Source of the DNA: Selaginella moellendorffii
Lineage: Eukaryota; Plantae; Lycopodiophyta
Assembly: GCF_000143415.4 (NCBI RefSeq)
Contig: NW_003314422.1
Location: 166,391-230,390 of the forward strand
Length of the DNA: 64,000 nt
Reading direction: 5' to 3'
The stretch's first letter is position 1, and each line of letters starts with the position of its first letter. The notes under the pieces were generated by a model. That model saw only the letters and a list, made by a program, of their open reading frames with translations, did not search any database and was not told the DNA's origin. A program made the position numbers and the translations under genes. Shown in pieces: positions 3,401 to 64,000 of this stretch.

Positions 3401-5949
3401 GGAAAAAGAAATCCTTGAATGTGTCCGCAACTTAGTGGAGAACTCCTTCACATGTTGCAATCGAGGGCGAATTGAACATTGATCTAAGCAAGTTGCTTCG
3501 TGCATCTCTCTTTCAGAAACATTAGAGTAAAAGAGAGGCCCGAGTCCACGTCTGGAATCCCTGGGTTCTTTCGGTCCGACACATCGCTCACATCCAAAGT
3601 AGCTAGATAGGAGAACTCATTGAATGCATACGAGAACTTCCCATGTCCCCCTATTATAAATTTTCTTCCTTTTTTATTAAAAAGGGCAAAAGAAAACAGT
3701 AAGAAAACAAAAACAAATCCTTGTAGTACTTCGCTATCAATTCTTATTGAGGCGTGGTTTGGTTCCGTAGCACACAACAATCTGCCACCTACAGGCCTGA
3801 ACAAAGTAAGAGTCGATACAAAAAAAAGGATTCATTGAAAGCTGATCCGTCAACAGCAAAAAGCACAAGTAAAAAAACAAAATAAAAATAAAATAAAATC
3901 TTTGTAAAAAGGTAATGGCACCATTCTCTCCACGTAAAAAAACCAAATGAAGAAAGCTGTGGTCCCTGTGGGAAACGATGCGCTGATCATCCCTTGTTTG
4001 TTTGTTTGCTTCTCTCGCGTCTACTCTCTGGCTTTGTTTGCTTTGCGTTTCTTTGGCTCGCCCCCTCTCCCGCCCGGCCTAGCGTAGCTTTAATGAAACT
4101 TGAGGGACCCTCTCTCTCTCTTTCTCGTCCAAATTGATCATGGAATTGTTCTCTTGATGATAAAGAACCTTGTCAAGCCAACTGGCGATGGCTACCACCA
4201 CCACCGCCACCTTTTCTTCCTATCATCGTTGTCAGTTGAGTAGAAGCCACGCCCCATCACAAGTAATTCTCTATGCACTGGGTCTTGACACACTACCCGT
4301 GCACAGGCGAGAGCTCGAGACGTGAAGTTGAGAGCCTGGAAAGCTGTGAGGCCTGGACCACTCATAAAACTCTATTTCCTTTCATAGAAATATCAATAAA
4401 GTATTTGAATTTATTATACAACACTATTATCTCTTTTGTCATGTCGTACCATTTGCATTGCGTGATCCCTGGTCAGACGCACGAGGATGTCACCCCAGTT
4501 TTTAAGAGACAAACAAGCGAAAAGATTGGAAACGGAAACTCTTACTGGTTTAGGATCAACTTAGAAAGAGGTATGCATACAGAGGGGCTATATAGTATAG
4601 TAAATAGCTTATCGTTTTCTGATTCTCTTTCTGCAGCCTAGGAAACGATGCACTACGCTCCAGACGGCGTCTGCCTGCGTGGAGATTGTGTGTGAGAAAG
4701 CGATGGATGGATTGAAAGATAGATAGCACCACCCGAGTCGTCTTCCTTTACTGGGTGTTTTGAGTGGGACTTGCTGCTGCTGCTTCTCAGAAAAAAATGG
4801 GTGGGGCAAGTTTCCATCACTTGAATTCCCGTGATGTAAGCCGTGTGCTCATTAAGCACGGCGGATTCACGAGAACTAGAGAGAGAGAGAGGCGGGGCGG
4901 TCTTTTTCGGGCCGCAGTCGGACTCTAGCTATCTGTTTCTGTATGCAAGAATTTGATTTTCTAGAAAGAAAAAATAGAAACTCTGTACCACCTTTCATAA
5001 TAATATAAGATCCCGTGAGGATGAGCGCTTGCAAGCACACATTTTCTTGCCTGATCGCCCTGCGTGGTGATGCTGTGTACGCAGATGACTCACATAGAAT
5101 ACTGAAAGACACTCGTAATTATTCACACTGGTACAGGGCCCCGGGAATATCACTCTTGCTTCTTGGTCTCTTCCTCTTGTAGCTAATCTCTCCACGCTTC
5201 CGAATGGAACAAGGAGCGTGGTTTTGGGGAACTGTTCTCTCGCTGTACACGCACAGCAGCATTTGGCAAGCTTTTTCCATTTCAGCTTCATTACACGGAC
5301 TGAGCACTGCTGGGCCTGCTGCTGCTGCTGGATCTGTGTTCATCCAGGACTTGGCTTGTAATTCAACACACCCCGCTGACAGTGACAAAGCTCTTTTGGT
5401 TTCTAGTCCTTTTGCAAGAGACGCGTACCAAGCACAGCTCCTCCAGACAAAAACGAGAAGAAGCTTCACCTCTTTCTCTAGTACTGGCAAAGAATCAAAG
5501 CACCTCTCACTTCAGCCATCCTGTTTTTGCACACATGACGCGTCTGTGTATGTCTCCTTTTCTTTTTTCCTGGCTTGACCATATACCGGCATTACACCAC
5601 CTGGCGTAAAATGGAAATTAAAGTCTTTGCATGGAACCACGTACTCCACCGTCTATATTGATTTCACTACACACACTTTGGAAAGACTTGTCAAACAGCA
5701 ACTCGGAACGAAACTTTTGCCGTGTGGTGGTGTGGACTGGGCACAGGCGCAGGCGAGTGCTCCTCTTTCTCGTGTCAGCTTTTGGGTGAAATTTACGCCC
5801 ATGATTTTATAGTGGAGCCTAACTTGCTGACTTTTGCTCCTTCGTGCTTGCTGCAAAACGCATAAACATTTGCAATCTGTAATCTCGTGCTAAAGATCTT
5901 CCGTGTTTTTTTATCGCTCTTCATCATCATTTGGATATCGTTCCGTGAT

Positions 5950-15027: not shown

Positions 15028-17607
15028 TTGGTTTAGTAAATTTGAACGGTGTAGAAGAATTGGTAGATTGATTAGTAAATTTGAATGGCAGGTGGATGAC
15101 TAGTTGCCTCATATGGAATAACTAAGAGATTGAGTGCGGAAATAGAGGTGTTGGTTCCTCTTTTGGCTCAGTATGGGTTATTAATCAATAGTCAATGAGG
15201 ATATTGACATCTCTTAAGAGGGGGTGAGTGTAACGCATGTGATTATGGGATGAGATTTAGATATACTGTCACCGTGGATCCTTGAAACCTTGAGGGATAA
15301 ATAGGGATAAAATAGCCACTAAGGGCTCTCTCATCAAGCAATTGGTGTAGAAGGATTGGTAGATTGATTAGTAAATTTGAATGGCAGGTGGATGATTAGT
15401 TACCTCATATGGAATAACTAAGAGATTGAGTGCGGAAATAGAGGTGTTGGTTCCTCTTTTGGCTCAGTAGGGGTTACTAATCAATAGTCAATGAGGATAT
15501 TGACATCTCTTAAGGGGGGGTGAGTGTAGCGCATGTGATCATGGGATGAGATTTGGATATACTGTCACCGTGGATCCTTGAAACTTTGAGGGATAAATAG
15601 GGATAAAATAGCCACTAAGGGCTCTCTCATCAAGCAATTGCCCTTTTTCCAGTTGGTTTAAGGGGAGAGAGATAAAGTGCGCTACACTATCTCGTTATAT
15701 TCTTTACACCGATAATAGCCACTAAGGGTTCTCTCATCAAACAATTGCCCTTTTTCCAATTGGCTTAAGGGGAGAAAGATAAAGTGCACTACACTATCTC
15801 GTTATACTCTTTACACCAATAGTATACTTCATCTTGAAAGTGTTGTCCCACTATAGCTAATTGTTCGCCACTAACCAAGAGGTAGCCTTAATCTTCTTTT
15901 GCTCATCGCCCATTGGCAGCAACATATCACCCCTCATTACTCAAAAGGGACAGCCAACATTCTTTTCCAAAGACACCACCATACCTCCACATCTCCATCC
16001 TCTCAAGCTGGTGTTGGTGCCAAAACTCCTAGTCTAACTCATTCTCTATCCAGTTTTGCATCACATTGCAGCACCATAAAGTCTCCAAATTTGAGACACC
16101 ACCATGGCCAAGGTTGCCCCTTCTTTGCCTTGCTCATTGCTCAATAGATCATTTTGTATTCATTTCTTAAGTGTTTCTTTGCATGTTTCACTCTTGCTCT
16201 CAATTTTTCAAGTCAAACTTTTGATCTAAATTTTATATGCTTATTAGACTTCTACCACTCCATATGGTGCACCTTTGGATCAACTTTGGGATTTACAAAT
16301 TAAATGTCTTATATAATAAATAATTTTTTTTAAAATGGAAGTACTAATTTTTGGTAGTTAATGTTTCTACCATTAATTGCAAAAGCCTAAAATTTTATAA
16401 ACCATAATATAATTCCAGATTACTCAAGGGGTAAAATACTGTATATTATTTTTTTTTCAAAATTTAATCTAAAGAGAACTTTTACAAAATTAAATCTTCT
16501 TACTACATAGCATTGGTATTAATTTTTCATAAACACTACTTTAATATGTAATTGCAAATATGGTAAAAGGGAAAAGGTATATAAATTTCATATTAAATAA
16601 TCTTATATATTTTAGAAAATCAAGATATTAATTTGTCAACAGTGTCCCTTTATATAAATAAATCAAAAACACTGAAAAAAAACAAACTCCCGACCTAAGT
16701 TGCATGATATTTACAATGTGTTTATTCTTTTGGGTTGATATTCCAAAGTTTAAATGTAAAATATATAACACACCAAAGAATAGAAGCCACATCTTTTATT
16801 ATGTGGATAGGAGTAAATAAAATACTCACACCCAGGGTTCTTCTTTGAATGTAAGGTTGGAACTTCCATTTCACCACTGCCAAATGCATACATTCTCATT
16901 TCATAAGCTGAAGGTTGCTTAAAACTTGCATTTTCCACCTTAATTTGTAAAATATAGTAATAATAACTTGTGCTTTAAGATTTTGATCTTCAATCTTTGT
17001 AGGTGATCTCATAAAACCATAAAAACACCAAACTATAAAGTTAATTATATATAAGCCATAATCTTGCTTAAATCTTCTTATGCAGAAGGAAGCTTTTATA
17101 AAACCTTATGCTCACAAGAAGGTTTGTGTGGACCACCTCTTCACTTGGAACCACTATGCAACAAAGAGTCTTCACTTTTCTAGTTGGAGTGTCTTTCTTG
17201 TCATGTAGCTCGTTGCCTAAGGGAACATCAATTAAGCCTCATCCTCTACCTTGTCTAGAGCATCTAACATAGCCTTGTCATATAAAGCATCCACCTATGA
17301 ACTTGGGGTGTCAAGTTCATGAGAAGGCTTAAAGGCCTCCTCCATTGCCATGCTATATAGAGCCTCCTTCATTATCACATTGCTCCTATGTGAAGGGTCC
17401 TCTTGTATTACATCACAAAGACAATCCTTCTTTGCCACTTTACATCAGACATTATTGTGCTCAACCACCACCTCACGATGTTCCACCACAACTATGATTG
17501 TTAAATGTAATTGTACTATATGGCCTACAACAACAACCTTATAAAGAAAAATAATCCAGATAATATTTAACACAAAACTTACATATCATAGATGATCATC
17601 ACACTAT

Positions 17608-44215: not shown

Positions 44216-46524
44216 GTCACATTCAAGACACTATATGTCATAAGTGGGATAATGAAAAATCCCAGTTTAACAAAATGAAGCATAATCATAAATAAAGCAA
44301 TTCGGCACAAGTTTATGAGCAATATAATTAGGTAAACTCCTTCATGCTTATCAGCCTTATAGCCATGTGTTTAATCTAGAACCCCACATAAATCCCCTTA
44401 AGAGCCAAAAATAAGTAAAGAAAACTAAAGAACTTAGATTTTCAACCATTTTTTTTCTCTCACTTGTGATCGCATATAAATTGGTAATCCTTATTTCTCT
44501 TGTGCCTAAATGCGGCTTTGATACAAAAAAAATTAGAAGATTCTAGAGATTATAATATTCTAGACTATTTCAACAATATCATAATTCAAAAATAGTTCCA
44601 TATTTTTCTGGAATATCAAATTAATGGCCTTCAAATGTACAATGCCACCCTAATATTCCAGAAAAATAAGGAACTAGAGCAATTTTAAGGACCCTAAACC
44701 TTAAACTGTAAACCCAAAACCATCTCTACCTAAAAAAATTATAAATATAGCACAAGAATCAATAAATTTTTAAAGTTTACTACATCTGCCTCATGTTTCC
44801 TACAAGCTATTTCTAAATCCTAAATTATAAACTTTTTTTCTAATGGGGAAATACCTAACCAATTATCTCACAACCTTTCTCAAGGTATTGAAGGAAATAA
44901 TTTATCTCCTTGGGTTTAGGGTAATTTTAAAGGTATAAACCATAAACCCTAAATTCTAGGGTTTCTAATATAAGCCTATAAAGATCCCTAAATAAATAAA
45001 TATATAATAAGAAATATAATGAAATGTGAATTAGGCAACTATAATGAGTTCTAAACAATGGTATAGTGAGTGAATGGGTGGGCAAAAAATTATTTGAAAT
45101 GACTCAAACTGATTACAATAATAGATGGCATGACATGATGTAAAGAAAACTTAGAAACCAGGATTAAAATAAGGAAATGCATAAGTTCTCAAAAGACAGA
45201 AGTTGGCACTATCTCAAAATGAAAATTGAAGTTTACATTTGTGCTCTTCTTGGTACCAGATCCTAGAAAAGAAGAATATGAAAGCAAAGAGAGAAAAACA
45301 AATAAAGAAAAAAAACAAAAAAATGAAAAAAGAAAAGTTTTCACCATATATAACGATAATAATGGAAAACATATTTGCAAAGATCTGGTGGTTGAGTGAA
45401 GTAGTTTTGACTATAAATGATATTGTAGTCACTAGAAGTCACTATATGGTGATAAACTGATGGCTCTAATAAGTTGGTGATAGTGTGTGAAACATAGCCA
45501 AGCTCAATTTAGGGTTTAGGGTTTAGTGTTATGAACAATATTTGGTGGCCATGGTTAAATCTTTGTGGGTTAGAACACACCCTCCACAAGCTTAAAAGCA
45601 ACTACTTCTTTATGGAAACATGTGTGGAAATTGTGATCACAAGAATAAAATAAAGAACTTCAGTGTTGGAAACTAGAGAGGAAAGCCAAAATTTTAAACT
45701 TTTTTTAATTGGGGAAATACCTAACTAATTATCTTGCAACCTTCCTCAACATTTGCTAAAAATAATCTACAGTAAATTCTAGGGTTCAGAAGGTAAGCCC
45801 TAGGATTTAGAGAGATTATTTAAAACCAAGGGTATGAATCTTTAAAAGATTTGGAAAGTTGTGATAAAAACATAGCTAGGTGAGTATCTATTATTGTATA
45901 TACTATATAGTAATTACCTTCAACTAGTTTTGTGTGTTATTTAGCGCTTCTAGCCCTATAACATAAACCCTAAGCCCTTATTTTAGAGTTTTTATTATTT
46001 CAAGAGTGTATGGAGGACATATATGATACAGTATTTATTATAATTTTATTATTTTTACTCATATATAAAAGTAATATGAGTTATGGTAAACAAATGTCCT
46101 AAACTAATATGTGAATGTCCAAGAACCTACTCTTGAGTGCCAAGAACCTAGCTAAAAGTTAGTGCCCTAAGTAAAAGCATTGCCATAGCAATGTTAAGCA
46201 CTAACATAAGCACCCAACAGGCCCTAAGAAATGAGGGCTAAATTTTCACAAATGTTTCTTTTATATGGTGTCTTGCAACTAATATTATACCTCAATTTAA
46301 ACCAATCAATCAATGTAATAATGTCTTTATAAAGTAATTGGAAAACCTTTTTTTAAAGAGTTTGCTAAAATTTTTTCTTATATAAATAAAATAAAATTTA
46401 GTGTAAATTTTAAAAGTAAAACTTATACAAAATTGTAAAATAAGTCTTAGCTATTTAAACTATAATTTAGAGTTTTATTTACCTCCTAGAAAGTTTTATA
46501 ATATTTAGAGGATATAAATCTTAT

Positions 46525-46612: not shown

Positions 46613-47317
46613 CAAAATTGTGTTCTATATGAGTTTGAGTTTTATATACTAACACATGAGTTTTCATATTTATACATCTAGTTTTTATACTTAATATTTT
46701 TATCTCCTTCCAGTGAGTTTATGGTGTTTAGCTTAAGAGAGGAAATTTTTTGCTGAAGATTAGATCAAGGTATAACTATAGTCATCAATAATAACTATGG
46801 CATAACTAAGTCATGTCTAAACTAGTATATGTATAGACATGACCAATTGATGAAATAACTGAGAATTATCCACTAGCTAGTTTATGCCTTATACTCTAAA
46901 GAGTTACTCCTCATTCACACAAGTATGAACCACATATGCCAAGGGGATGCCTCAAAAAAATTATAGCTGAACTATCTCTAACTTAGATATATATGCTTAG
47001 AATATGCCTTGATCTTTAATTACCAATCTCTATCAAAATTTTATACAAATAAACAAGAACTTGGTTAATAAGATTTTGGTTTTAGGATTTAAATATTTTG
47101 ATTTAACCCTAAACCCTAGGGTTGATAAATGTATATATACATTACCTCATATCCCAAAGGGACTAAAACAACATAAGAGCACACTCTCAAAGAAATTAGC
47201 AAAACTATGAGCAAAAACACCCAACACTGCTTTTGGGCTGTTTGCCTCACTCCATTGAGAAACTTAATGCCACTTGTTATACTCCATAACCTGTGAGACT
47301 TGTTATGGAACACTCCA

Positions 47318-50873: not shown

Positions 50874-51315
50874 AAGCTCTATTTCGTTAAAGTGGGAATT
50901 GTCATTATCCCACTTGTAAAATAAGGTTTCCAAACCTTTATATAGTATATAAATATAACAAAATTCAACTGCATTGAGGCACATGCCATTTTATTTTAAA
51001 CAAGGAAATGTCTACTCAATCACTTCTCCTCCCCCTGCCACTGCTTCACCTCTCTCTTCTCCTTGTCATCGTCGTCCAATTTCTTTCCATCCTTTTAATA
51101 TTGGCTCAGTTGCTCCGAGTCTAGATGGAGCCCAAGTCCCCATTCAATCTTTACTTTCCCCTTATTAATAAAACAACTTCGTAGACTTCCAATAACATGC
51201 TGTAACACTTCTAGTATAATGCAAATCCTCTCAAAGAATTGTCTTTTAATATTAATACAATGGCATGGAACCCCATGCCATAATAAGTTACATTTTTAAA
51301 TAAATACATGCCATC

Positions 51316-54300
51316 TCAGACTGTTATTTTTTGCCTCCAACACCTATACAATAATCTTGGAATTTCATCACTCTCCACACTATCAGGATTTAAACCCAAT
51401 AGTAATGCCATCTCTTCTCTAATACGTCCACACTCATGTTCAGTGGTCGAAGAACCCATCCGGTTGAGCAGATTATGGAGATGCGGATAGTGCTTGGCTA
51501 GACAATATACATGCCATAAATGATGACTGGTGTCTGTCCGATCAAATGGCTTCTGATATACCGTTCCATCTGCCATTTGGTTGATTTCTGCAGCCACCTC
51601 CTGGACTGGCCGGTTCTCTATCACCATCGCTTCAAGCCGTTTTGCAAGGTCCCCCAGAACATACGGTTTCTTCTCCCTAGTTTCCATACTGCAAGAGATG
51701 GGGTGCACTGCATATGTGTGCATGTTCGCTGCAGTTTTAATCGGCGAGTCATCGATGATGAGGATTTCACTTGACCTAGCAGTCTGGTTCATCACTACAG
51801 CCTCTGCCTTGACGAAGATGGGCTTGCTACCCCTCACATGGACCATAGTCAAGCAATCCTCCTGCGTTAGGAGAAAGTCAAATGGTAATATTACTCGCGT
51901 CTGATCGTGCATCATCTGTAGCAACATTAATGCATTGTGGCGCATCATGGATGTCCAAACTCCCAATTGCAAATTGAACCCGGCCCTCTGTTTTAAGTGT
52001 CGCATGGTCATTATTAGATCCCGCAGTTTCTCCCGTGTGATTAATGTGAATCTGTCTCTTTTGACCAACTTGCGACCGCAGGCTTTGGAGGGTGCAGTGA
52101 CATTCGAGGACGAGCCACGCTCATGGGAGAAAAGGACACCGTTCAGATCAAAAATGATACAGTACTTTTGCCGTGACTCTGAAATGAAATGCGTCAGCAT
52201 AAAAAATGGTACAAGTCAATTTTACCATCTACAATATTAGCGAATGGTGCTCCCGATGGTCGTTCAGAGGGTTTTGGTCGAGGAAACGTGAAGGGCGGAA
52301 ATACTCTCCTCTGCAATGTGGGGTCAATCGCATCCGATGGCGTGTGGGCACATACCATTTCAGCTGTAGACTCTGGTACAACTGGCTCAACAGTGGCATG
52401 GGGTGGTTCCGATGGCGTGTGATCACACGCCATTTCAGCTGGTGCCTCCGTTGGCAAAGTGGACATGACCGAACAGGCAGCAGGGGCGGTGTAGGGAGGT
52501 TCCAACGGCGCGTAGTCAGACGATTGGGCACACGTTGGAAATGAGGATACGACCGGCTCGGCGGCTGGGGCGGCCTCATGCGGGTCCAATGGCGCCTGGT
52601 CACTGTCAGTTGGATACGTGGACAAGATTGACTCAGTGGTATGGGCAGCATCAAGTGGAGCGTGGTCAACTTGCTTGGCGTTGATATGGATAGTAGCCTC
52701 CACCAGCTCTGATGACTCTTGCAGGCAAGTAGAGTCCACTGGCGGATCCATATGCATGTCCAAATATCTCCCTTCGATTGAGATGGTATCCTCCCGTGCT
52801 ACTAAAAACAAACTCATTAGCACATTGAATCGACTATACTGTATTTACCATCAACTGCTATTGAGGAACTAGGACCGATATCACTTGGGCGCACTGCTGA
52901 TTTTGAAGGATTGGACATACGTTTCGACCCTTGCTTGGCACTATCCTTCCTCGACACTAAAGGCTAGAGTTTGTATCTTAATTCAACTGAATAATCTCTA
53001 CTTACCATTTCTTCTGCGACCTACATGGACAATGTTAGAAATGGTAAAAGGTTAGGAATGGATGTACTATTATTTACCTGATGGTTTGTCTTGTATGACC
53101 TTCCTCCGCTGCTCTTTGGCCACCTCAGGCTGGCCATCGTCGTCATCATCGTCATCGTCGTTATTGTGATCGTCACCATTGTGAGGACCATCCAAGTCCT
53201 CTTCGTCCTCCTCTTCTTCATCCTCCTCTTCTTCGTCCTCCTCTTCTTTGTCCTCCTCTTCGTCCTTCTGCTCTTCCTGCTCATTATCTTTCTCTGGCTC
53301 CTCATCCCCCTCTTGCATTTCTTCCATAGGCTGCTCAGGTTGGATGGCTTGTTTTTCCAGGACCATCTTGGGAAAATCATCTAGCCGAGTCTCCATCTCA
53401 AAATACAAGACATCCATAGCCTGTTTTAGTGCGTGACCTAGGACCGTATCCTCACCCGACTGTCTTAACATGGTTTCTACACGTTCTTGCACCCTTCGAA
53501 AACGACGAGATGAGAAAAACGTGGCCCTGACTTGAAAAGCATCCCTCATCCATTGTACCTCTCCATTGAGATTGGGGAAGGGGAGTCCGCCATAGGAATC
53601 TGAGTCAGAAGGTGGTGACTGGCTCCTTTCACTCAGCCCTTGATCTGCAATGAATGGCATGAGCACACACGCCATAACCGCGAGGCATTACCTATCATCT
53701 TTTCGTTGCCCTTCTTCCTTTTCGAATCAAACGCCTCTGATCCTGACGACTGTCCAACGTGCTTTCGCTTTTTATGACCACTGTCAGTTTGAGCTTGGCT
53801 GGTGCTTGCCTGTTTTGCCTTTGAAGAAGTGTCTCCTGCAAGGAATGGCATGAGACCACACGCCATTGCAAATATAATTTGTACCTCCTTTTTCCTATTG
53901 CTTGTCTGTTTGTCCTTCTTCGACGCGCCACCAGTGCGCTTTTCAGTCCTCGTGTCTGAATATTCACAATGATCTATAATCAAAATGGCGTGAGGCCTCA
54001 CGTGACCTTACCTTGTGCAGGTTGTGAGCTCGGCCTAACATCAGTAGCTGTTAACGCCGTTTCAGCATCTGGGGGTGGCCACGCTCCTGCATACAGAGCT
54101 TGTGAGATAACATTTAAACTTAAAGTGCGTACTCACCAGGTTCGTAGAGAAGATACTGTTTTTCTTTGGCAACTGTAATTATATGCTCCATTGAAGTCAC
54201 CTCTTCAATGGAGTTTGTCACCGCAACACACGGGACACCCTTGAGTAGTGCGGCTCGAAAGAATAGTCCGCCGCAGTTGTACTCGACAACGCATTTGCCC

Positions 54301-56447
54301 TTGGAGTCACCCGCTATTGCGTTGAAGACCCAGCTGAGCATTTCCCATGCTGCACCTGGAGCTTTCTTTGGATTCGAAAGCTCCATAGCCGTCTTCAGTT
54401 CCTCAGGCACGGGTAAATTGACCTCCCTCAGATCAATTCGATCGGCTTTGTTGAACGAAGCTGGGAAGTCACTCCAGTCCCACTCTGCTGCAGGACCAAT
54501 AACAAGGGCGACTGTGAAGATGCGAACATTCGTCGGTATCTTCTTCTTAGCCATTATCCCATGGATCTCCCGCATCTCCTTGCTTTTCAACCGAGCCTTC
54601 ACCTCGTTCAAGGCCTTCCAGAACTTGTGATAGGATTCGGAGTCGTAGATCATATAGTGGACTGAAGATTCCACCTCCGCAAGTCCCACCATTAAGTCAA
54701 TGATGGAGCTGACTTCGTCTGCATGAGTGATCTCCTCGTTTGTGAAGTCCATCACACAAAAGATGTTCTTGACCTGCTCATCTCCGCGGGAAACGATGCT
54801 CCTCCACCTTTGATCCTCATCCGAATTCACGTATACCCGGTAAGGTTCTCGATAGGCCTCTGCTGCGGGGTCGAGCTGTTTCTGAAGCCGGCGGTCGACA
54901 TCCCTCTTAATGAAATTTGGATACTGATCCAACTTCTCAGCTTTACTTTTCGTGGCATCCCGCAGCAGATCGATGAACTTGGGGGCCCCCTTCACGTACT
55001 CGTCGATGTCTTCATTTGACAAGTCCAGCTCTTCCATCATCTCTTGCGTGGTGTCGATGCTCACCCTCGCCACGGCCACTTGCTCGAAGATCCAATCCTT
55101 CAATAGCGCACCCATTGAGTGCAACAATTCCCCGGCATGGTACCTCCTCAGCACATCTACCCATTTGTCAAAAACAACTTTTGTCGCGAGTAAAATGTTA
55201 TGGATGCTGAGTGTGTCATTGACCCCTAGTGTTTTCGAGAGAAGACTCGAGAATTCCTGCAATGGAAATGGCGTGAGGCCACATGCTATGCCACATGCAA
55301 CGAGGCTTACCTGCCAGGCGCTAGTTGCTAGTGCACGTCCTTATCCTGGTTTTTGTGGCTTCTTCAGTTGAACCCAGAGCTTCCGTGTTCGTGCCAATGT
55401 CTCGTGCAGACCCGATTTGTAGCACGTTTCTTGCTTGACATTCTGCGCGTGGGAGATGTATATGATAGATCGGAGGGGCGAGTTGCCTTTTATCAGGCGG
55501 ACAACTCTTGTCTTGAAGACTTTCTTCACCTCCTCGCCCACCATAATATCCACAACTATCTGTTGCATTGCCAAGCTAGAATGCTGCCCGGAGACGGCAT
55601 AGAACCGGATGTTCTGATCGTCCAACACCTTCCTATTGATCAAGTCTGGAAACCTCGTCTCGCCCTTCATTGTTCGGTAGTAGGGGATCACGTCTGCGAT
55701 GTCGGGTGTTACTGGACTTGCCAGCATCTTCTGCTTCAGTTTCTCCACCCACTCATCAGATACTAGCCTGTGGTTGTATTTGCTTTGGATCTCGATACGG
55801 CTCACGTCGATTGTATATACTTTGTTGGAATAGTAACAAGTACTATTATCTGCAACAATTTTTGCTGCCTCTTCTTGCTCTTTCTGCTCTTTGAGGCTCT
55901 TCTTTTTGGTGGGTGTAGTGTTCGAACCCGAGGCAATGGCATCACCGAGTAGCTTCTTTTTTGGAGCAGCAGAGTCGGACGTCGGCTTGAGCTTGACCAC
56001 CTTTTTCTGCTTCGGGGTAGTTTCCAGATCGACCCCCTTCCCCTTCGCTTCGCAAACTGGAGGCACTCTCAACGGCTCAATGTTGGAATATAGTTTTTGA
56101 ACATCGTCGTAGGTGAGGTCCGTGGATTCCATGTGATCTTCATAGACCCGCAGCGTCTTTGAAATTGTGGGCCTCCTGGACAACCTCTCCCTAGCTCCCT
56201 CTAGGAATTCCTCATAGCCGCTGCCCCCCTCTGGGAAGCCGCTAGGATGTGCAAGGTGGATCTTGAAGGCGGACGCTGTCTCTACCACAAGTGCCAGTCC
56301 ATATTCTTGCATGGAACTGCATGGAGTGTCTGTCACTTGGATGAGGATCCCCATGCATTCTTTTCTCCCACCATCTTTGTTGTACAGCATCAGATCCTCG
56401 CCTTCCATCCCGACTTGTGAGCTCCTCCCCCTTCTCTGCATCCACAT
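51316..56447 (-). pseudogene. Large multi-exon gene: ParB-like domain - degenerate N4/N6 MTase-like domain - acidic/low-complexity region - FCP1/NIF-like HAD domain; this copy has at least one stop and a probable frameshift
   Basis: NHRLVSDEWVEKLKQKM...RFYAVSGQHSSLA (ParB/DGQHR-like). SKGKCVVEYNCGGLFFRAALLKGVPCVAV (motif-I-like). CIIFDLNGVL...GVWTS...FVK...LIIDDSPIK (FCP1-like). Exons linked by GT-AG introns; in-frame TAA at 55341 lies inside an exon that continues to the donor at 55310. Confidence 0.7.
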
Positions 56448-57419
56448 TGACAGTGGCTGGAAGAAGAACGCAATTCCTCGCCTGTTCAGAAATGCACAAC
56501 AATTAGAGCTGACAGATGAAAAGCTAGCAGCTGGAAATAACGTGAGGCCACACGCCATTCACCACTGCATCAGATGTCTTGAGGCTGCATCCTAAGATGG
56601 CGTGAGGTTACACGCCATCTGTAACCGGACTGCACTCGAGAGCCCAATCGGTGCATGCCAATGTTGCTACTGAATGGCATGTGGCCTCATGCCATTTTCT
56701 ACTTGGTCTAAAAGACTTACCATTTGAAGCCGAATGGAGGCCGTGACAATCGAGGCCGGACTCGCTGGCGAATGTGCACTGTGTGTGCAGCGGATCGTAG
56801 CAGCAAGGCTACTCTGCCACTTACAGTTGGAGAGTGGTGCTGAAATCTCCCGAGACGCCAAGTGGGCTGCGTGTGGGTGGCGGAGTGGGCGGCGGAGTTG
56901 GCGGCGAAGTTACAAACTGGGTGTGTCTTGAAGTGGACGCCGATGCACACGAGCGCGATGCGAGCGCGAGTGTGATGCAAGCGCGAGTGGACGCCGATGC
57001 ACACGAGAAACCTGTAGAGAAGTGAGCATGATCGCGAGTGGGAGCGCGATGCGAGCGGGAGCGCGAGTGTGATGCGAGCGCGAGTGCGAGTGTGCGAGCG
57101 CGAGTACAAAGCAAAATGCAAAACCTAACCTCACACGCGCGAAATGTCACAACGGTTGGTAATCCCGCCACGTCATCATTCCTCGGACTTGGGCGCCACC
57201 ATTAATTTCTGGATTGCCGCGCGCATGCAAGCACGCAAAATCCATAAGAAATCCGCAACGTCATCATTCCTCGGACTGCATGCACGCGAAATCCAAAAGA
57301 AAGATCATGATTGGGATATCATTTAATACCCTCGCTATATTTATACCATGCATGATTGGATATTCCAAAGCATCTTGTATTTCCAAAAATGGCAGATGTT
57401 CAGCTAAATAAAGAAATTC

Positions 57420-58820
57420 TATCTGTTTCTATTTTTCTCTCAAATCAATATTATAGCGTGTGGGCTCATGCAATTTTGAACCAAAGAAACCCAAAAAACG
57501 TTGGACCCAAAATATTTTGAAAAAACCCAAAAAACCCTAAACATTTTAAACCCAAAAATCCAGGCGTCCTGTGGCGTTATTCCTTAAATGGCGTGTGGGC
57601 GCATGCCATTTTCAGGGCCAAATGCTGAATGGAGAAAAATTCCCTTTCAGTGCAAATGCTGCAAGAGGCAGATGCCGAGCACAAAGGATTGTAACTACCT
57701 CACATGACACAGATAAACTTTTCTCTATTTGGCAAAGATAAACTTTATAGCGTGTGGGCTCATGCAATTTTGAACCCAAAAAATGCACCAAAAAATTCTC
57801 GGCGTCATCTGGCGTTATCTCTTGAATGGCGTGGGGCCGCATGCCATTTTCAGGGGCACATAGGAGTATATTCCTAGGATATTCTAACACGCGCGAGATT
57901 TTTTTGAGTTTTCTGGAGATCCAACCGTTAGATCGCAACTAGATTTTACAGAATGGTATACAATGTCTTTCTTGATGACCCTGCAAAGAAGCATCTCGAT
58001 CGGACACCACATGAGACCACACGAGCCTTACAATGTTTCAGGGGCATTTGCCATAGATCCGACCGTTATTTTGCTCCAAGATTTTACAGTTTGGTGTGCA
58101 TTGACCTTTCCATCGAAACTGCAAAGGGACATCACAATCAGATGCGGGATCACAAGAAACTAATTTCACTAACTCTGGTTTCACCAAGATCTACGTAAGG
58201 AGTTATGAAATGAAAAGACCCTCTCTATTGAAATGTGTTTATGGTCCTAGGGGCATTGTGACATATCAAAAGATTTTGCATCAAGTTCTGTATTTGCATG
58301 TTTATCAAGCTACTGAATTGCTAAACCCTAAACCCTAAACCCTAAATATGTGGCAAATGCTGCGTGAAGAAAGATGCCCTTTCTGGGCAAATGCTGTAAG
58401 AGGCAGATGCCGAGCAGATGTATCTCAGGCTAGCGAAGGGGACAAACGAAAGCTAGCTATAAACATGACGGGATGCAAATAGATTACTAGGCTGGTCCTA
58501 CGAAAATCAAAAACCATAATTGAAAACATTGAAAATCCAAAAAGAAAGGTTTATAATATTTTTGAATTTTAAGCAACCAAAGGAATGTAAGTAGGGCATG
58601 TGTTTGTAAGTTTAAAAATGCCTCAACCACTTAAATTCCCAAGTAAATAAAGCTGTTTCTATTTTTGGTACAGGTAAACTTTATAGCGTGTGGGCTCATG
58701 CAATTTTGAACCCAAAAATGCACCAAAAAATGCTCGACTAGCATTATTCTTTGAATGGCGTGTGGCCTTATGTCGAGCATTATTCTTTGAATGGCGTGTG
58801 GCCTTATATTGCCATAAATG
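57420..58820 (+). repeat. Three diverged modules, each with a pair (or more) of palindromes
   Basis: ATAGCGTGTGGGCTCATGCAATTTTGAACC...ATGGCGTG modules at ~57420, ~57720 and ~58650. GCAAATGCTG.AAGAGGCAGATGCCGAGCA occurs at ~57652 and ~58387. Confidence 0.85.
58321..58346. repeat. Short interstitial telomere-type repeat (CCCTAAA)n
   Basis: CTAAACCCTAAACCCTAAACCCTAAA; a shorter TTTAGGG tract lies at 45508-45526. Confidence 0.8.
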
Positions 58821-59678
58821 GACGTACACACACAGCATAATTATTCCTTTACACGGCGAATAATCTTGGCGCGGATCGCTGACATGGCATGGCAAAGTTC
58901 GAATCACTGACATGGCACAGCTGGATCGAGGCAAGGACATGATGTGACAAAGTTCAACCTCCGACAGCAAAGTCTAGAAGCTACTCAGTTTGAAATTTGT
59001 CAGAGGAATCATAAGATCTGGTTTGTCAGAGGATTTGATGTGACATTCAAGCGTGTGTTATTTTTGAATTCTCGAACTCATTCCTAGGTCTATCATTTTT
59101 GTGCGCCGTGTTCTTGGTTCCGCTGAGCGCAGTGAGCGCTGTTTGTGTAAGCGGCGTTGTGGGCTGTGGTTTATGCGTCTACGAGCGGTTGCGGCATTGC
59201 GAGCGCCATTGCGAGCGGCAGTTTATGCGAGTGGCAGTTTGTGCGAGCGGCGCTACGAGCAGTTGCGGTGTTGCGAGCGGCGCTACGAGTAGTTGCGGTG
59301 TTGCGAGCGGTATTGTCTTTGGTGTGGCTACCGCTTCCTCTTGATATTCGGCACTTGTGCTTCCTGGTATGTTCACCATGGAATGGCTTAGGACCACATT
59401 TAGAAATGGCATGAGGCCACATGCCATCTTGGGCCCTTGCAATTTCATGGCTAGCGTATTGTCATGTATGTTTTTACTTGCCTGCAGCTGTGTGTATATC
59501 AAGATGGCATGAGGCCTCATGCCAATTTTGTGAATGCGAAATTTCACGTGGGTGTCAATAGCATGTTTGAATAATGGCATGTGGCCTCATGCTATTGAGG
59601 TTGTTTGGTATGTTATGATTTAGGCCATTCTCCAATCATTTTTTGTATGGTCTTTAACTTCTTTTCTGCACTTTCAGA

Positions 59679-59980
59679 ATGGCCTTCAGGGTTGGGGAAA
59701 AGGTTTACATTTTGAATGGTGGGAAGAGAGTTGCAAAAGTGACCCTTGTGTCTATGGATCGGAACTTTGTTATACACTGTCAAAGGCTTGGGGAAGGCAA
59801 TGCTGCTGTATCAGTAGAGACTGTCTTCGATGGGAATGTGGTCGCTATTGAACGAGGAGAGATGGTCGTCGGGGTAAATGTTGTTGTTGCCTTGAAAAAT
59901 CTTCAGAAGAAAGCAGATGTTGGGGACAGCGCAAGTGCGACGCATGTTCCCTCCGTGGATCTTAAGAACCGTGCTACATG
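59679..59980 (+). pseudogene. En/Spm (CACTA) Tnp1/TnpA-like ORF, apparently truncated at ~59980
   Basis: RVAKVTLVSMDRNFVIHCQRLGEGNAAVSVETVFD resembles the Tnp1/En/Spm-like VA.G.......HG..LG....V.V..V pattern. Composition changes abruptly to short repeats after 59980. Confidence 0.5.
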
Positions 59981-60257
59981 GGGCTGGGTAGTTTTTGAGC
60001 TGAGCTCACGAGCTGAGCTCAAGTCAATGAAAGTCAACGAAAGTCAACGGAAGTCAATACAATCCCCTAACTAGCGAAAGTTTAATGGCACTACCTTAGT
60101 TCGTCCTGAACCAAGAATTTTTAACATAAAATCTAGGTGTTTAAGGTATTCCATAAGCTCATGTAGATTATTGGTTCGACATGAACTAATCTTTTAGTCT
60201 ACAAAAAAAGAAAATAATATATTAAACAATATAATTTATATTAAAATCAGAATATAT

Positions 60258-63200
60258 TCAATCTTCTTCTGCTTCCATATCCAGAAAAGTAGAAATGGGT
60301 ATAGTGGAATGCTCCTTCACTATAGGCTCGTGTTGTATGTAATGTTGTGCCATACGTTCAGCATAAATAGGTAAGTGGAATTGACTTTGGTCCATATGAT
60401 CATCCATATCATCAAGATCAAGCGTGTGGACTGAAACACTGTGTGTGATAAGTGTAGACCTAATAAAATAGAAACATTTGAGAATAAATATTATAGATTA
60501 TTTCAAGCACTAACATCACCTGTCGCAAAATCTCCTAAGAATGTCCTCAAAGGCACCCTCCTTCTCAAGTGCAAAAACCGCTCGGCCTGTCTCTTTTGCT
60601 GCCTGCACCATTGATCCAAATCCTGCTGTAGCATCAAGCACAATCCCCTTTGGCGGACAAAATAACTCCAACAAGATTTGCATGGCCGTGACCGAACGAT
60701 GTCGATAACCAGGGAACGCTGGGTGAAGAACGTCCGAGTCAATCACATTTGGGATGATGTCTGTAGAGCTGTCATATCCTGGTAAAGCAAGAGCAACACG
60801 CTCGTCAGCTCGTGTGGCATTACGCCGGTTCCCAATGTGGCATAGAGCATGGTAGTTCCAGGAATAAATCTGGAAAAAAAAAATAGAATAGAGTTAATTT
60901 ATAAATAAAGAAGTCACACACCTTTCGCGTCTGCCTGCTAGTGCCTTTTGTGTCCACCGCCATACTCGAAAGAAGGCAGCCAGATGAAAACTCAACAAAT
61001 CCATCATCGTTGTCAGCCAAGTGTGCGAGAAGGCCTTCCCACATTAGAGAGCGAGGAAGGATCATGACAACCACACCCTCGTATGTCATGAAGCTGCTCG
61101 CAACCTTTAAGGCTTGGGAAATGTGTTGGGCCTGCAACACATTCCATGACGGAGTATCCCCCTGTGGTGGTGCCATCCCATCGGGAAGATCAAAAAAGAT
61201 GAAATCGATCTTCCCATAAGGTGTGAGCTGACCCAAACCATGGATCCACCGATCAAGCATGTAGAGCTCCCGACTAGTAGCATCTAAAAGCTGTGTGTAA
61301 TCCCCAATGAGAATAGCAACTTCCCCAACACTGGCCGTTGGGGATAGAGGGCGAACCTGAAAATCAATTATTAGAACTAAAAGTTGAAGATAAAATTCAT
61401 GCTTACTAACCTGTTTATGCATCGCTGCAGAGGAGAGCTCTTCTAGGTCGTCATCTGTAGCCGTAGGGAGGGATGGGAAGAATGTCTTAGTCCGCCGAAA
61501 AGACTGATGGCTGCTCTCTGCAACATCTATAAAACAAAAAGTGAAGTCAAGAATGAATAAAAGAATGTTCCAAATCAAAGTCCTTACTCTCATGAAAGGT
61601 TTCATGACGGCCCCTTCGGGGGTTGCGAGGAGCAGGTACTGGAATCTCTTGTGCTGGAATTTCCTGTACAATTTCCTCTGGTTCAACAGTATTTGGATTT
61701 GGCATGGTTTCCTGAGTGCTGACTTCTAGGTTTAGTTGTTGAACTTCAACAATGTCGTTATCACAGTCAGAAAGAGCCTTTGGAAAATAAGAATATAACT
61801 CAAGGTTAATATTTCCTAGCTAAGTGCTGAGTTTCAAGTGAACCTGGATGACATTCAAGGTAGAGATCTAGCTCGAAGTCCGATGTTAGCATCTGCTCCA
61901 CGAGTTCAAGGTACCACGGGCATAGCTCCCTCTCATGTGTACAAGGACAGTAGAACTCTGGCTCATACATCCCAAGCTTCTTGCCTCTAGTCAGGAGCTT
62001 CTGCAAAACACCGGTTGTGTATACCGGTGCGCCGGGGCTATATTTTAAATATCTACAAAGTAAAACAAAAATATAAATACCAATATATAAATGAGAATTG
62101 AAAAAATACCTGTAAACCATGCGCCTCGCAAGAAATGGTTGTCCTGGTTGGTTCTTGAACTCAGCCGAACTCGTCCCACCACGTGGAAGCCAACCATTCC
62201 CTAGCTCTGCAAGACAAGCACGAATATATTCTTCGAGAGTGATACCTGTGCGGGTGCTGGAAAGAAACTTCTCATCCCAGACTTGTAGCATCTCCTCACC
62301 AGCGGCAATACTCTGAGAAATGTACGCCTTCTCCTTCATCACCTTCTCCATCCTTATCTCGCAGCGTTTTTCGTTATTTCGCAGCCAAGTGTTGAGAAGT
62401 TCCAAGCAGACACTTTGTTCAGCAAAGGACATTTTACTCTTAGAGATGTTGTAAATGAGTTCCTCCGGTGCTTTACCAGTTCCTACACACACAAAGAGTT
62501 ATGAAATGTTTCACAAATTTTATAAGAACTTACGAACGCGAGAACAAATCTCGGCAATGCTATCAAGCCATTCTTGCCCGCGTCGTATGTCTGCAATCGA
62601 GAGCAACTTTTTCACCTTTGTTCTCTTCGTATTCAAAATTCGCTGCTCAATCGCATGCCACTCCATCTCCTTCTGCTGCTCGTCCCCTCGAGCATTTTTA
62701 AAGAATGACGCTCTTTCTCCTTTGATTATGGGCTGCAAGAAACATTATGTAAGTTGATACATACTTCAATAATAATTTACCTTCGCCCAGACAGCAACTA
62801 GAAAATCAAGTGGCAGTTGGTACCAAGTCTGCAATTCTTGGCCTTTCCTAGCTCCTAGCTTCACTCGAATTGCTTCAAATACCTCACGATTGTACAACGT
62901 TTGGACCTCCTCTAGCGAGAGCATGCCCATAAACCGAAGGTGCTCAATGTCATGTACCAATGTATGAGCTTGAAACGCAAATTGGTTTAGCCTGCAAAAA
63001 CACGATATTAGCTAAGTTTACAAAAAATAAATTCTTACATGTTGATCTTATGGCATGCCATGTTGAGCTTCACAGTGTGCTCCCGAGTCATTGGTTCGAC
63101 AAGTGTGACTGGAACACTAATGTGTCGTTCTTCGTCATCTCGGAACTTCTCTTGAATGCACTTCCAAAATGCCAGCCACCTATGGTTTCCATCGATCACC

Positions 63201-64000
63201 CAAAAGAGCTTTCCAATGAACCCTGCTGTCTCCACATGTTGTCCTAAGAATCCATCAAACTCACGAGACTTTCGCAGCCATATAGGATCCCATTTTTCCT
63301 CAAGTTCAGTAGTCACTGACTCTGTCCGGCCGGTTCCAAGGAAAGTTGGTGAAACGATGAAGGTACCAGCTGTGCTCCCAAACCCGACCTCGGCAAAGGA
63401 GCTGTAGATAGCCATGTTGAGGTCGTAAGCTGAGCGCACCCAATGGCTTTGAACCAATCGGCACAAAGGAACTAGAAATCGATGAGGGCCATTCCACGCC
63501 ATTTCCTGTAACACTTTACTGACTGTCCGTTCTTGAGCTTGGATAATTGTGTCCCGAACACGATCATTCAAGATGGTGTCAGAATCATGCATGCATAATC
63601 CCTCACCACCATTAGCTCCCCCTGCACCACCAGCCTGAGGAGCAGTAGGAGCAGCTACCATGCCCCCAGTAGCCTCTGTAGTAGATCCACCTACAACGCT
63701 ACCAATAACGTCCTCAGCTGGTTCATTGACCTGGCCGCGAGCAGCCTCAGCAACCGAAGGCATAGCACCCCCACCACTGCCAACATCAGATGCAAGTACC
63801 CCACCACCAGTACCCGCAGCCTCAGGAACACCAGTACCAACAGCCTCAATAACACCAACATCGATTTGAGTGTTCATCTCAACATCCACGTCATTGTTAT
63901 ACTCATCGTTGCCTCCAGCATGACTAGCCGAAACTTCATTAGATACTTGAGATGAATCTCCACTCAATCGGCCAAGCCCACAGCGATCAAGGCGGCTGCC
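60258..64000 (-). CDS. Multi-exon ParB-like domain + beta-class N4/N6 DNA methyltransferase-like protein (5' end beyond the window)
   Basis: KLFWVIDGNHRWLAFWKCI (ParB/Srx motif, ~63190). VAILIGD...KIDFIFFDLPDG...ALKVASSFMTYEGVVVMI (motifs III-VI, ~61.0-61.3 kb). LFCPPKGIVLDATAGFGSMVQAAKETGRAVFALEKE (motifs X-I-II, ~60.56-60.67 kb). The frame is open to base 64000; last-exon phase suggests a possible 1-nt indel. Confidence 0.8.

Follow-up and report, generated by a model that had tools for sequence, protein, structure and literature searches.

In the bacterial ParB/parS system, parS is read by the helix-turn-helix of ParB and not by its N-terminal nucleotide-binding domain. A different system of repeated sites is that of maize En/Spm: TnpA, a DNA-binding product that is not the transposase, recognizes many repeated 12-bp subterminal motifs, including inverted pairs, and influences both the transposition and the epigenetic state of the element. 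The VANC proteins of Arabidopsis VANDAL elements have short, family-specific motifs, which accumulate in the non-coding DNA of each protein's own element (PMC5735166, PMC10398659). ParB domains have been described in ParB-HTH + Dam fusions of chlorophytes and chytrids (PMC4738411) and in a ParB-MTase accessory gene of Sola1-1 in Ectocarpus (PMC12477816). The red-algal Plavaka protein PAG3 (Bostrychia) combines ParB with a 2OG oxygenase; arrays of inverted repeats lie next to its gene, and on the basis of these repeats it was proposed to bind its own element (10.1101/2025.02.11.637652).

The window studied here is a stretch of 64,000 nucleotides (64 kb) from Selaginella moellendorffii. Its segment from 50968 to ~60080 is best explained as what remains of a large cut-and-paste DNA transposon, in a copy that is both truncated and decayed. 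This element carries an accessory gene (gene 1, 51316..56447, minus strand, roughly 1,575-aa model) and a divergent plus-strand ORF (59679..60074), which is probably the first coding exon of a transposase gene. Between the two divergent genes lies an intergenic region (56750..59350), which is bordered on either side by GCGAGCG-type repeats and contains repeated palindrome-bearing units. On the right the element is truncated, seemingly at about 60.0-60.1 kb; TIRs and a TSD are seen in relatives in the liverwort Riccia sorocarpa. An earlier note on this DNA had called the divergent ORF TnpA-like, a label that depends on a non-significant match to Pfam TNP1 (PF03017, E = 0.033).

Scattered over this element are copies of a palindrome with a constant length of 22 bp. 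In the 64-kb window, ATGGCRTGWGGCCWCAYGCCAT is matched 17 times at ≤ 3 mismatches, where 0.00 matches are expected (100 shuffles), and 21 times at ≤ 6 mismatches. All 21 lie within 50968-59595, and the search of the rest of the window returned no full copy; isolated 8-mer half-sites outside 50968-59595 are few and at chance level in the window scan. The count of about 20 copies, their fixed length and their confinement, as put forward in the earlier note, are thereby confirmed. The consensus had also been described as its own reverse complement. This applies to the true dyad, 8-bp arms (ATGGCRTG / CAYGCCAT) flanking a 6-bp NGGCCN core, but not to the W positions, where complementary pairing is mostly absent. 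The R/Y degeneracy corresponds to CpG versus TpG/CpA, and each half-site contains a CpG. The arms change independently and compensatory change is absent (219/500 shuffles reach the observed score), a pattern more in keeping with recognition of half-sites in duplex DNA, together with decay at CpG, than with selection for a hairpin. Solo half-sites in a single orientation occur near the element end, both in the window (50982, 51307 and 51510) and in locus L008 (390 and 435), and look like the subterminal motifs of other transposons.

The palindromes sit almost exclusively in non-coding DNA: in UTRs, in short introns and between the two genes. Coding sequence makes up 54% of the span yet holds just 2/21 copies (binomial P = 2.5e-5); the palindromes are thus specific to the element and avoid its coding sequence. 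The leftmost copy is degenerate (50968..50989, 6 mismatches) and the next one (51260..51281) lies 35 nt beyond the gene 1 stop codon. Both in-frame copies (52337..52358 and 52412..52433) fall in the Pro/Ala-rich linker, one in each unit of an in-frame 75-bp tandem duplication. Four copies are located within GT-AG segments of 38-54 nt: 53654..53675 in a 47-nt intron (53645-53691), 53845..53866 in a 49-nt segment (53836-53884), 53985..54006 in a 38-nt segment (53974-54011) and 55268..55289 in a 54-nt intron (55257-55310). The 5' leader of gene 1 contains three copies (56537..56558, 56597..56618 and the perfect 56674..56695), as does the leader of the divergent ORF (the perfect 59406..59427, 59504..59525 and 59574..59595). 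About one third of the copies are intergenic. Three of these (57453..57474, 57747..57768 and 58683..58704) are identical variants, ATAGCGTGTGGGCTCATGCAAT, within a duplicated unit of ~80 nt, two are single copies (57588..57609 and 57826..57847), and two are half-decayed (58755 and 58791, together 58755..58812) within a 36-bp tandem duplication. The placement reported earlier, past the stop codon, in four short introns, in the leaders and in the intergenic region, is thus reproduced. The unrelated flanks reported with it are found for most copies where the flanks were read, the exceptions being the three sets of duplicated units (57453/57747/58683, 58755/58791 and 52337/52412); as these hold several copies, ~14-15 independent placements remain. 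A MITE-like mini-element, which the earlier note had raised as an alternative, was rejected: no flanking or target-site duplications were seen when the flanks were read, and the arms are not TIR-derived, the Riccia TIRs being unrelated to the palindrome.

Gene 1 encodes, in order, a ParB-fold domain, a helical region with an MTase-motif-I-like stretch, an acidic tract, the Pro/Ala linker and a NIF/FCP1-like C-terminus. Three kinds of evidence support its introns: the logic of the reading frame, a further copy in the genome (runs X5 and X19) and an intron position that is conserved. The phase-0 intron at 55257..55310 (minus strand) coincides in position with L001:11681-11876, an intron of Riccia, and its 54 nt are a multiple of three. 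The window copy is a decayed pseudogene with an in-frame TAA (55341..55343, minus strand); in the second copy, a G at 55343 gives CAA. Two RNA-seq runs, each sampled at ~12%, gave no coverage of gene 1. Between the window and X5 copies, 42/52 differences are A>G or T>C, and the window copy shows C-to-T decay of the kind typical of methylated repeats.

The N-terminal domain (55344..55880, minus strand) contains an invariant SGQHS and, as modeled, has a ParB/Srx fold, in line with the ParB-like product named in the earlier note. The AF2 model (pLDDT 81, pTM 0.71) finds ParB, Noc, KorB, PadC and Srx structures as its best Foldseek matches (probability 1.00), and nearly all of the 50 listed matches are these or other structures of the ParB/Srx superfamily. 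Alignment of the model with residues 37-132 of M. xanthus ParB using VIA-align gives Z 11.0 and an rmsd of 2.0 A over 95 residues. The family is rare, with 12 matches among 1.84 billion representatives. The structural matches span ParB residues ~21-140 alone, which is the N-terminal nucleotide-binding (CTP-binding) domain, and the model stops at the exon boundary. Across the family, the invariant motif [SD]GQH[ST]xxA replaces CTP-binding box II (GxxRxxA), and none of the members has the arginines of GxxRxxA at those positions.

The MTase motif-I-like stretch (VVEYNCGGLFFRAALL..., 54189..54305, minus strand) weakly matches the N6_N4_Mtase-like region of Riccia, and the earlier MTase-like assignment comes down in the window to this one match: the exon has no Pfam match, and hhalign pairs just the motif-I-like EYNCGG with its Riccia equivalent, at an E of 0.005 and a probability of 7%. 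In the Riccia copies, the match to PF01555 is itself sub-threshold (E 1e-3 to 2e-4) and the DPPY-type motif (motif IV) is absent. A bona fide beta-class N4/N6 amino-DNA methyltransferase (PF01555), which is marked by motif I FxGxG and motif IV (D/N/S)PP(Y/F), was therefore rejected, and the region is, judging from its motifs, best called a degenerate or pseudo-MTase. The NIF/FCP1-like last exon (51316..52178, minus strand) likewise has no Pfam match, whereas its Riccia counterpart matches PF03031 at 7e-11; it retains FDLNGVL, with Asn for the second Asp of DxDx(T/V), and LIIDDSP, aligned to the Riccia motif.

The earlier note had suggested looking for palindromes that co-vary with the protein, and such variation is found at great distance. 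Relatives of the gene with 24-30% identity occur in Riccia and in three environmental contigs, each amid palindromes of a different sequence. In Riccia, the homologous gene (ParB-like, weakly MTase-like, NIF phosphatase) stands head-to-head with a transposase with DUF8039 and DUF7869 domains, and these two are the only genes called in the loci. Five Riccia loci with the homologous gene or the transposase contain 17-48 copies of another 22-bp palindrome, TCWTSGSGAYGCRTCSCSAWGA, where ~0 are expected, with no copies beyond the span of the palindrome arrays. One locus is TIR-bounded at both ends (L009, where inverted TIRs occupy 4063-4082 and 16029-16048 and the 4-bp target-site duplication is TAAA) and one at a single end (L001). 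With their TIRs, target-site duplication and transposase, the Riccia relatives are TIR cut-and-paste DNA transposons; their TIR (ATCAGAGTATTCATTAAA...) contains no palindrome half-site. The environmental contigs (L006, L007 and L003) each have yet another palindrome adjoining the ParB-like exon. The intron after that exon shares position and phase between the window and Riccia, and contains one lineage-specific palindrome in the window versus three in Riccia. The arrangement of gene and palindromes thus recurs, each time with another palindrome, in a minimum of four or five lineages. Riccia ParB-like exons that are merely ~50% identical still have a common palindrome core, so that co-variation is visible only at great distance. 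New here are the pair of accessory gene and transposase in Riccia, the lineage-specific palindromes and the conserved palindrome-bearing intron.

Since relatives pair the same gene with other palindromes, the palindromes are probably recognition sites of the element itself. We propose, by analogy with VANC and TnpA and with a probability of roughly 0.5, that they are cognate sites at which a protein encoded by the element binds, the ParB-fold accessory protein being the likeliest binder. That any protein binds them, which one does so and with what effect, we infer. Several observations count against this proposal. The ParB match is limited to the nucleotide-binding domain and lacks the GxxRxxA arginines, the transposase accompanies the palindromes in all loci, and the palindromes of L009 persist without the ParB and MTase exons. 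Single-orientation half-sites lie near the element end, Riccia exons of ~50% identity have a common palindrome core, and the window copy is dead, with no transcription seen in the two RNA-seq runs.

The palindromes could instead be sites of the transposase (e.g. of an N-terminal DUF8039-type domain), acting as extended subterminal repeats in end recognition or synapsis, with the ParB-fold protein as cargo with another role. We regard this as a possible but doubtful explanation. No complete locus has the palindromes without the transposase gene, and comparison between loci therefore does not distinguish it from the accessory protein. L009 retains the transposase and 23 palindromes after the loss of the ParB and MTase exons, although it may be a deletion derivative served in trans. 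The palindromes of L001 are densest toward one end (17 copies in 951-3483), and the solo half-sites near the ends also fit a transposase. However, the TIRs, which a transposase must recognize, are unrelated to the palindrome, and sites also occur mid-element, in the accessory-gene introns and the central intergenic region, whereas the motifs known from other TIR families are confined to the ends.

It is unlikely that the palindromes are merely selfish or neutral, having multiplied inside the element without serving it, whether as a very small palindromic insertion sequence or through repair or gene conversion. Bacterial and organellar palindromic insertion elements tolerate coding sites, and two copies here lie in frame in a low-complexity coding linker, single copies have unrelated flanks and one intron has a length divisible by three. 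A concerted change of roughly 20-50 dispersed sites between lineages also has no explanation. Neutral spread is nevertheless hard to reconcile with the recurrence of different palindromes in the lineages above and with the conserved intron; nor were target-site duplications seen in the flanks read, or copies in the 55 kb of neighboring host DNA of the window or outside the Riccia array spans.

We consider it quite improbable that the palindromes act as nucleic-acid structures, be it as pre-mRNA or leader hairpins that tune splicing or expression, as cruciforms or as small-RNA sources or targets. Perfect copies do form 8-10-bp hairpins that are more stable than those of shuffles (-7.6 to -10.8 kcal/mol, z -2.6 to -4.2), and transcribed non-coding sequence holds many of the copies, at 9-11 nt upstream of a 3' splice site. 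Yet arm covariation lacks compensation, G/T combinations on one strand are A/C on the other, the intronic copy at 55268 folds no better than shuffles (z -0.2; the copy at 53845 still somewhat better, z -2.6), about a third of the copies are intergenic, and an Rfam search gave no family match. Dicer-type processing needs a stem longer than the 9 bp available. Least probable of all is a host factor that reads the palindromes as a silencing or targeting mark, for which the CpG in each half-site and the methylated-repeat-type decay of the window copy could speak, as no host factor was found and an element would be expected to shed host-recognized sites rather than keep 20-50 per lineage and renew their sequence.

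Returning to the cognate-site reading, the comparison with known systems sets its limits. With ParB/parS, Noc/NBS and KorB/OB, the element shares the predicted N-terminal fold and palindromes of comparable length, located on the DNA that also carries the gene of the putative reader. Unlike ParB/parS, it has SGQHS in place of the CTP-binding GxxRxxA, 20-50 dispersed sites instead of few clustered ones, a eukaryotic transposon setting and a protein fused to MTase-like and phosphatase-like parts; the parS-reading helix-turn-helix lies outside the structural match. A ParA-type partner was not found either, as no ATPase family appears among the Pfam-scanned ORFs of the window element and Riccia L001. 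A partition system, or a strictly defined ParB/parS system, is rejected on the missing arginines and on the missing partner among these ORFs; the earlier note had spoken of a candidate ParB/parS-like system. VANC motifs likewise amass in non-coding parts of the element encoding their binder and differ between related families, but VANC is of a different, unrelated fold and has short motifs in tandem repeats where the element has 22-bp palindromes, and its anti-silencing effect is demonstrated, where that of the ParB-fold element is presumed. TnpA would be a parallel as a non-transposase element product with many repeated motifs, inverted pairs included, although these are subterminal only and TnpA is not ParB-fold. 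The algal elements with PAG3 and Sola1-1 are likewise giant DNA transposons in which an accessory protein with a ParB domain is encoded opposite the transposase; the elements described here differ in their land-plant hosts and their effectors (a degenerate MTase-like region and a NIF phosphatase), and have single palindromes across introns, UTRs and intergenic DNA where PAG3 has tandem arrays beside the gene.

Intact relatives have two head-to-head genes, one for a DUF8039/DUF7869 transposase and one for an accessory protein. In the latter, a ParB/Srx-fold domain is joined by a region that resembles a degenerate beta-class amino-methyltransferase, by an acidic tract and by a phosphatase domain of the NIF/FCP1 type. 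A dimeric element-encoded protein, most probably this accessory protein, would bind the palindromes as duplex DNA, and the spread of sites over every non-coding segment would mark the entire element as 'self'. The phosphatase-like and MTase-like effectors, tethered in this way, may affect how the element is transcribed or packed in chromatin. For the idea of such self-binding, the red-algal Plavaka PAG3, the ParB-MTase of Ectocarpus Sola1 and the VANC motifs are published precedents. The outcome would be an anti-silencing or self-regulation device, as with VANC and En/Spm TnpA on their own repeated motifs.

The 22-bp palindrome ATGGCRTGWGGCCWCAYGCCAT has 17 matches in the window at ≤ 3 mismatches, and dinucleotide shuffles give none. 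At ≤ 6 mismatches there are 21 copies, and all 21 lie within 50968-59595, which bears out the restriction of full copies to approximately 51-59.6 kb proposed in the earlier note. This interval falls within the element studied here, a truncated and decayed copy of a large cut-and-paste DNA transposon. The remaining 55 kb of the window contains no copy and carries ordinary land-plant genes, encoding NB-ARC/LRR, a MACPF protein, an NPF transporter and an E motif-containing PLS-class PPR. When 18 copies are aligned, the 8-bp arms flanking an NGGCCN core are invariant, and the R/Y positions correspond to the CpG that each half-site contains, which is either preserved or has decayed to TpG/CpA. The flanks that were read are mostly unrelated, and no target-site duplications were seen by eye beside the copies. 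Several copies lie within local duplications, leaving about 14-15 independent placements. Although coding sequence makes up 54% of the span, it holds only two of the 21 palindromes (P = 2.5e-5), both in a Pro/Ala-rich linker. No family in Rfam matched.

The accessory gene of the element (gene 1) was modeled on the minus strand from 56447 to 51316 so as to preserve the ORF, yielding roughly 1,575 aa and introns of 38-54 nt. Four introns bear a palindrome (53645-53691, 53836-53884, 53974-54011 and 55257-55310) and three do not (54087-54136, 52802-52848 and 52179-52225), hence short introns belong to the gene as such and did not arise through the palindrome. A second genomic copy, about 1% different, is present in the public sequencing runs X5 and X19. 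Its 1-nt insertion at 53888 implies that a 49-nt palindrome segment must be spliced to keep the frame, and it has the consensus bases at two palindrome differences (52354 and 56608). The 'RNA?' contigs of X19 were rejected as intron support, as they retain the introns and seem to be genomic DNA from another copy. Compared to X5, 42 of the 52 differences are A>G or T>C, i.e. mostly C-to-T-type changes in the window copy, one of which created the in-frame TAA at 55343-55341 from CAA. Together, the stop codon and this substitution pattern point to a window copy that is dead and probably methylated. No transcription of gene 1 was detected in two RNA-seq runs from 2026, each sampled at about 12%, in which coverage was confined to a 40-nt piece of its 5' leader (56788-56827). 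About 300 reads cover this piece, all running into unrelated sequence on both sides. The piece and the loose read ends resemble a segment of the large-subunit (25S) rRNA; if so, it would be a captured rRNA fragment and not expression of the element.

Several other features surround or punctuate the element. Plant-type telomere-like repeats, (CCCTAAA)n, occur in its intergenic region (58329-58350) and left of the element in AT-rich DNA (44942-44966 and 47103-47125). GC-rich GCGAGCG-type short repeats lie in the same orientation on both sides of the central intergenic region (56900-57100 and 59130-59310), directly upstream of each gene's leader, and may be promoter or first-exon repeats. A 55-nt inverted repeat with 78% complementarity (44227-44281 and 50876-50930) brackets a 6.6-kb AT-rich segment that stops 38 nt short of the leftmost palindrome and is probably another TIR element, inserted beside the palindrome element or into its end. 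On the right, a neighboring minus-strand gene (60258-64000) shows clearer motifs, namely DGNHRW (ParB/Srx-type) and, as MTase motifs IV and I, DLPDG and AGFGS. It was rejected as a relative of gene 1 and belongs to a different family, since BLASTP revealed no similarity between the two; it has no palindrome array and no Pfam match, and is probably cargo of a different transposon abutting the truncated element. Its ParB-like exon contains ATGGCATGCCAT (63050-63061), two palindrome half-sites joined without the 6-bp core, which may be a chance product.

Sequence searches with the gene 1 protein gave few matches: none in Pfam for all its large ORFs, none in NCBIfam for the alignment of its ParB-like family, and none of significance against PDB sequences with phmmer and a profile. 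The 380-aa exon likewise retrieved nothing in a word-indexed homology search, probably owing to a length filter. Scanning all 1.84 billion representative proteins with HMMER retrieved 12 weak relatives (best 1e-8), whose alignment displays an invariant [SD]GQH[ST]xxA motif. Single-sequence AF2 prediction of the domain was unusable (pLDDT 32), and an alignment of 18 sequences was required to obtain a confident AlphaFold model of the residues encoded by 55344-55880 (pLDDT 81, pTM 0.71). Nearly all of the 50 Foldseek matches listed for this model are ParB, Noc, KorB, PadC, sulfiredoxin, SbnI or other ParB/Srx-superfamily proteins, and the same-fold clusters in AlphaFold DB include entries named DNA methylase N-4/N-6, DGQHR-domain and ParB/Srx-domain; judging from their accessions, these relatives may come from mosses, Chara and marine invertebrates. 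VIA-align superposes it on residues 37-132 of Myxococcus ParB (Z 11.0, rmsd 2.0 Å, 95 residues). The ParB-like label of the earlier note thus holds for the fold, but not for a CTP switch or a partition system, as the CTP motif lacks its arginines and no ParA-type partner was found among the ORFs scanned. The modeled domain is the ParB nucleotide-binding N-terminal domain and not the parS-reading helix-turn-helix. The MTase-like label retains a motif-I-like stretch in the next exon as its one support in the window copy. The phosphatase label derives from FDLNGVL and LIIDDSP motifs, which align with an exon of the liverwort Riccia sorocarpa matching PF03031 at 7e-11.

Homologues of gene 1 were identified in R. 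sorocarpa by profile search. Five loci share its part order (ParB-like, weak N6_N4_Mtase and NIF), with the exception of L009, which has lost the ParB and MTase exons, and the accessory gene is arranged head-to-head with a DUF8039/DUF7869 transposase. For the divergent window ORF (59679-60074), comparison with the N-terminus of the Riccia transposase gave a single marginal 21-residue match (E 0.047). The copy in L009 is complete from end to end at about 12 kb: its inverted termini, ATCAGAGTATTCATTAAA..., occupy 4063-4082 and 16029-16048, with a TAAA duplication on either side, which identifies it as a real cut-and-paste transposon. A matching terminus is also present in L001, L008 and L010; the ends of the window copy were looked for and not found. 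In each of the five loci another 22-bp palindrome, TCWTSGSGAYGCRTCSCSAWGA, is present in 17-48 copies against an expectation of about 0; these copies are confined to the element and again located in introns and intergenic DNA. Array architecture differs between the lineages: palindromes stand singly in the window, whereas in Riccia they often form runs of two or three at 27-28 bp start to start (e.g. L001 11681-11876 and other introns). Some Riccia variants read CATGGCGATGCGTCGCCATG (L001 12344-12365, L002 11250-11271 and 1931-1952), and their outer bases, ATGGCG...CGCCAT, are those of the window palindrome, which may be coincidental or may preserve part of a shared ancestral half-site.

The architecture is kept between the liverwort and the other land plant at about 27% identity. 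The intron after the ParB-like exon is conserved in position and phase between the two, with one palindrome in the window versus three different ones in Riccia. For the palindrome introns, an Introner-type origin was rejected because the 55310-55257 intron matches a Riccia intron in position and phase. Three short environmental contigs encode ParB-like exons 24-30% identical to that of Riccia. Beside this exon, L006 carries GGAGCAAGCGATATCGCTTGCTCC three times and L007 carries CTCACGCGAGGCTCGCGTGAG-type units at least nine times, while L003 has a 31-nt palindrome just past its 5' splice site. Related families with different palindromes, for which the earlier note had proposed to look, therefore exist in Riccia and in all three contigs. 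The cis motif is completely replaced between lineages; the shared intron position and phase combined with lineage-specific palindromes show that gene and palindrome array have long been paired and that one palindrome sequence has given way to another.

The palindromes are best read as candidate cis sites for a dimeric element-encoded protein. We put the probability that the accessory protein is the binder at about one in two. Its predicted fold is that of a DNA-segregation family, the sites extend across the whole element and not the ends alone, and the palindrome bears no relation to the TIRs, to which the transposase must bind. The arms also vary independently, without compensatory change, which favors this protein and argues against a selected hairpin. 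Against certainty, Riccia ParB-like exons that are about 50% identical share a palindrome core, the transposase accompanies the palindromes in every case, L009 keeps 23 palindromes after the loss of its ParB and MTase exons, and solo half-sites near element ends resemble subterminal motifs. That the transposase binds the palindromes instead is about half as probable. Structural, selfish or host-factor readings jointly take up the rest, the hairpin among them having failed the covariation test. The idea of a palindrome as two abutted TIRs was rejected on comparison with the Riccia TIRs, and a partition system for want of the CTP motif and of a ParA-type partner among the ORFs scanned.

On a bolder reading, which we consider less probable, a ParB-fold protein that has lost the CTP switch would bind dozens of co-evolving 22-bp palindromes across its own element. 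Binding would tether a CTD-phosphatase-like domain, and also a dead methyltransferase serving as a DNA or SAM reader, to the element's own chromatin, and the effect would be polymerase control or a block on silencing.

Transposon ParB accessory proteins and the self-binding idea have already been published. Sola1 of Ectocarpus is a giant transposon with a ParB-MTase accessory protein (PMC12477816), inverted-repeat arrays adjacent to PAG3 (ParB-2OG) of red-algal Plavaka elements prompted the same self-binding hypothesis (10.1101/2025.02.11.637652), and fusions of ParB-HTH with Dam are on record from chlorophytes and chytrids (PMC4738411). For VANC of Arabidopsis VANDAL elements, experiments have shown binding to motifs that are specific to the family and lie in the element's own non-coding DNA, which counters silencing (PMC5735166, PMC10398659). 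No description of the land-plant family (ParB fold, degenerate MTase, NIF phosphatase and dispersed 22-bp palindromes, some intronic) was found in the literature searched, and to that extent the combination is new.

Experimentally documented, sequence-specific self-recognition by transposon accessory proteins is limited to very few cases, namely VANC and TnpA of maize En/Spm. The logic here would be the same, but with a prokaryote-type ParB fold. Tentatively, and with the odds against it, we propose that transposon self-recognition in land plants and other eukaryotes may include an ancient class not yet described, which would combine a ParB fold lacking the CTP switch, palindromes, and a tethered phosphatase-like domain and dead MTase. 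With its defined 22-bp site and domains, the element offers a protein-DNA pair that is concrete and can be tested, as well as a natural series of co-diverged protein-palindrome pairs. It also raises the puzzle of how 20-50 dispersed sites, some of them within introns of conserved position, change in concert. Tethering of the phosphatase-like domain to the element, if it occurs, would give mobile elements a new means of manipulating transcription or silencing.
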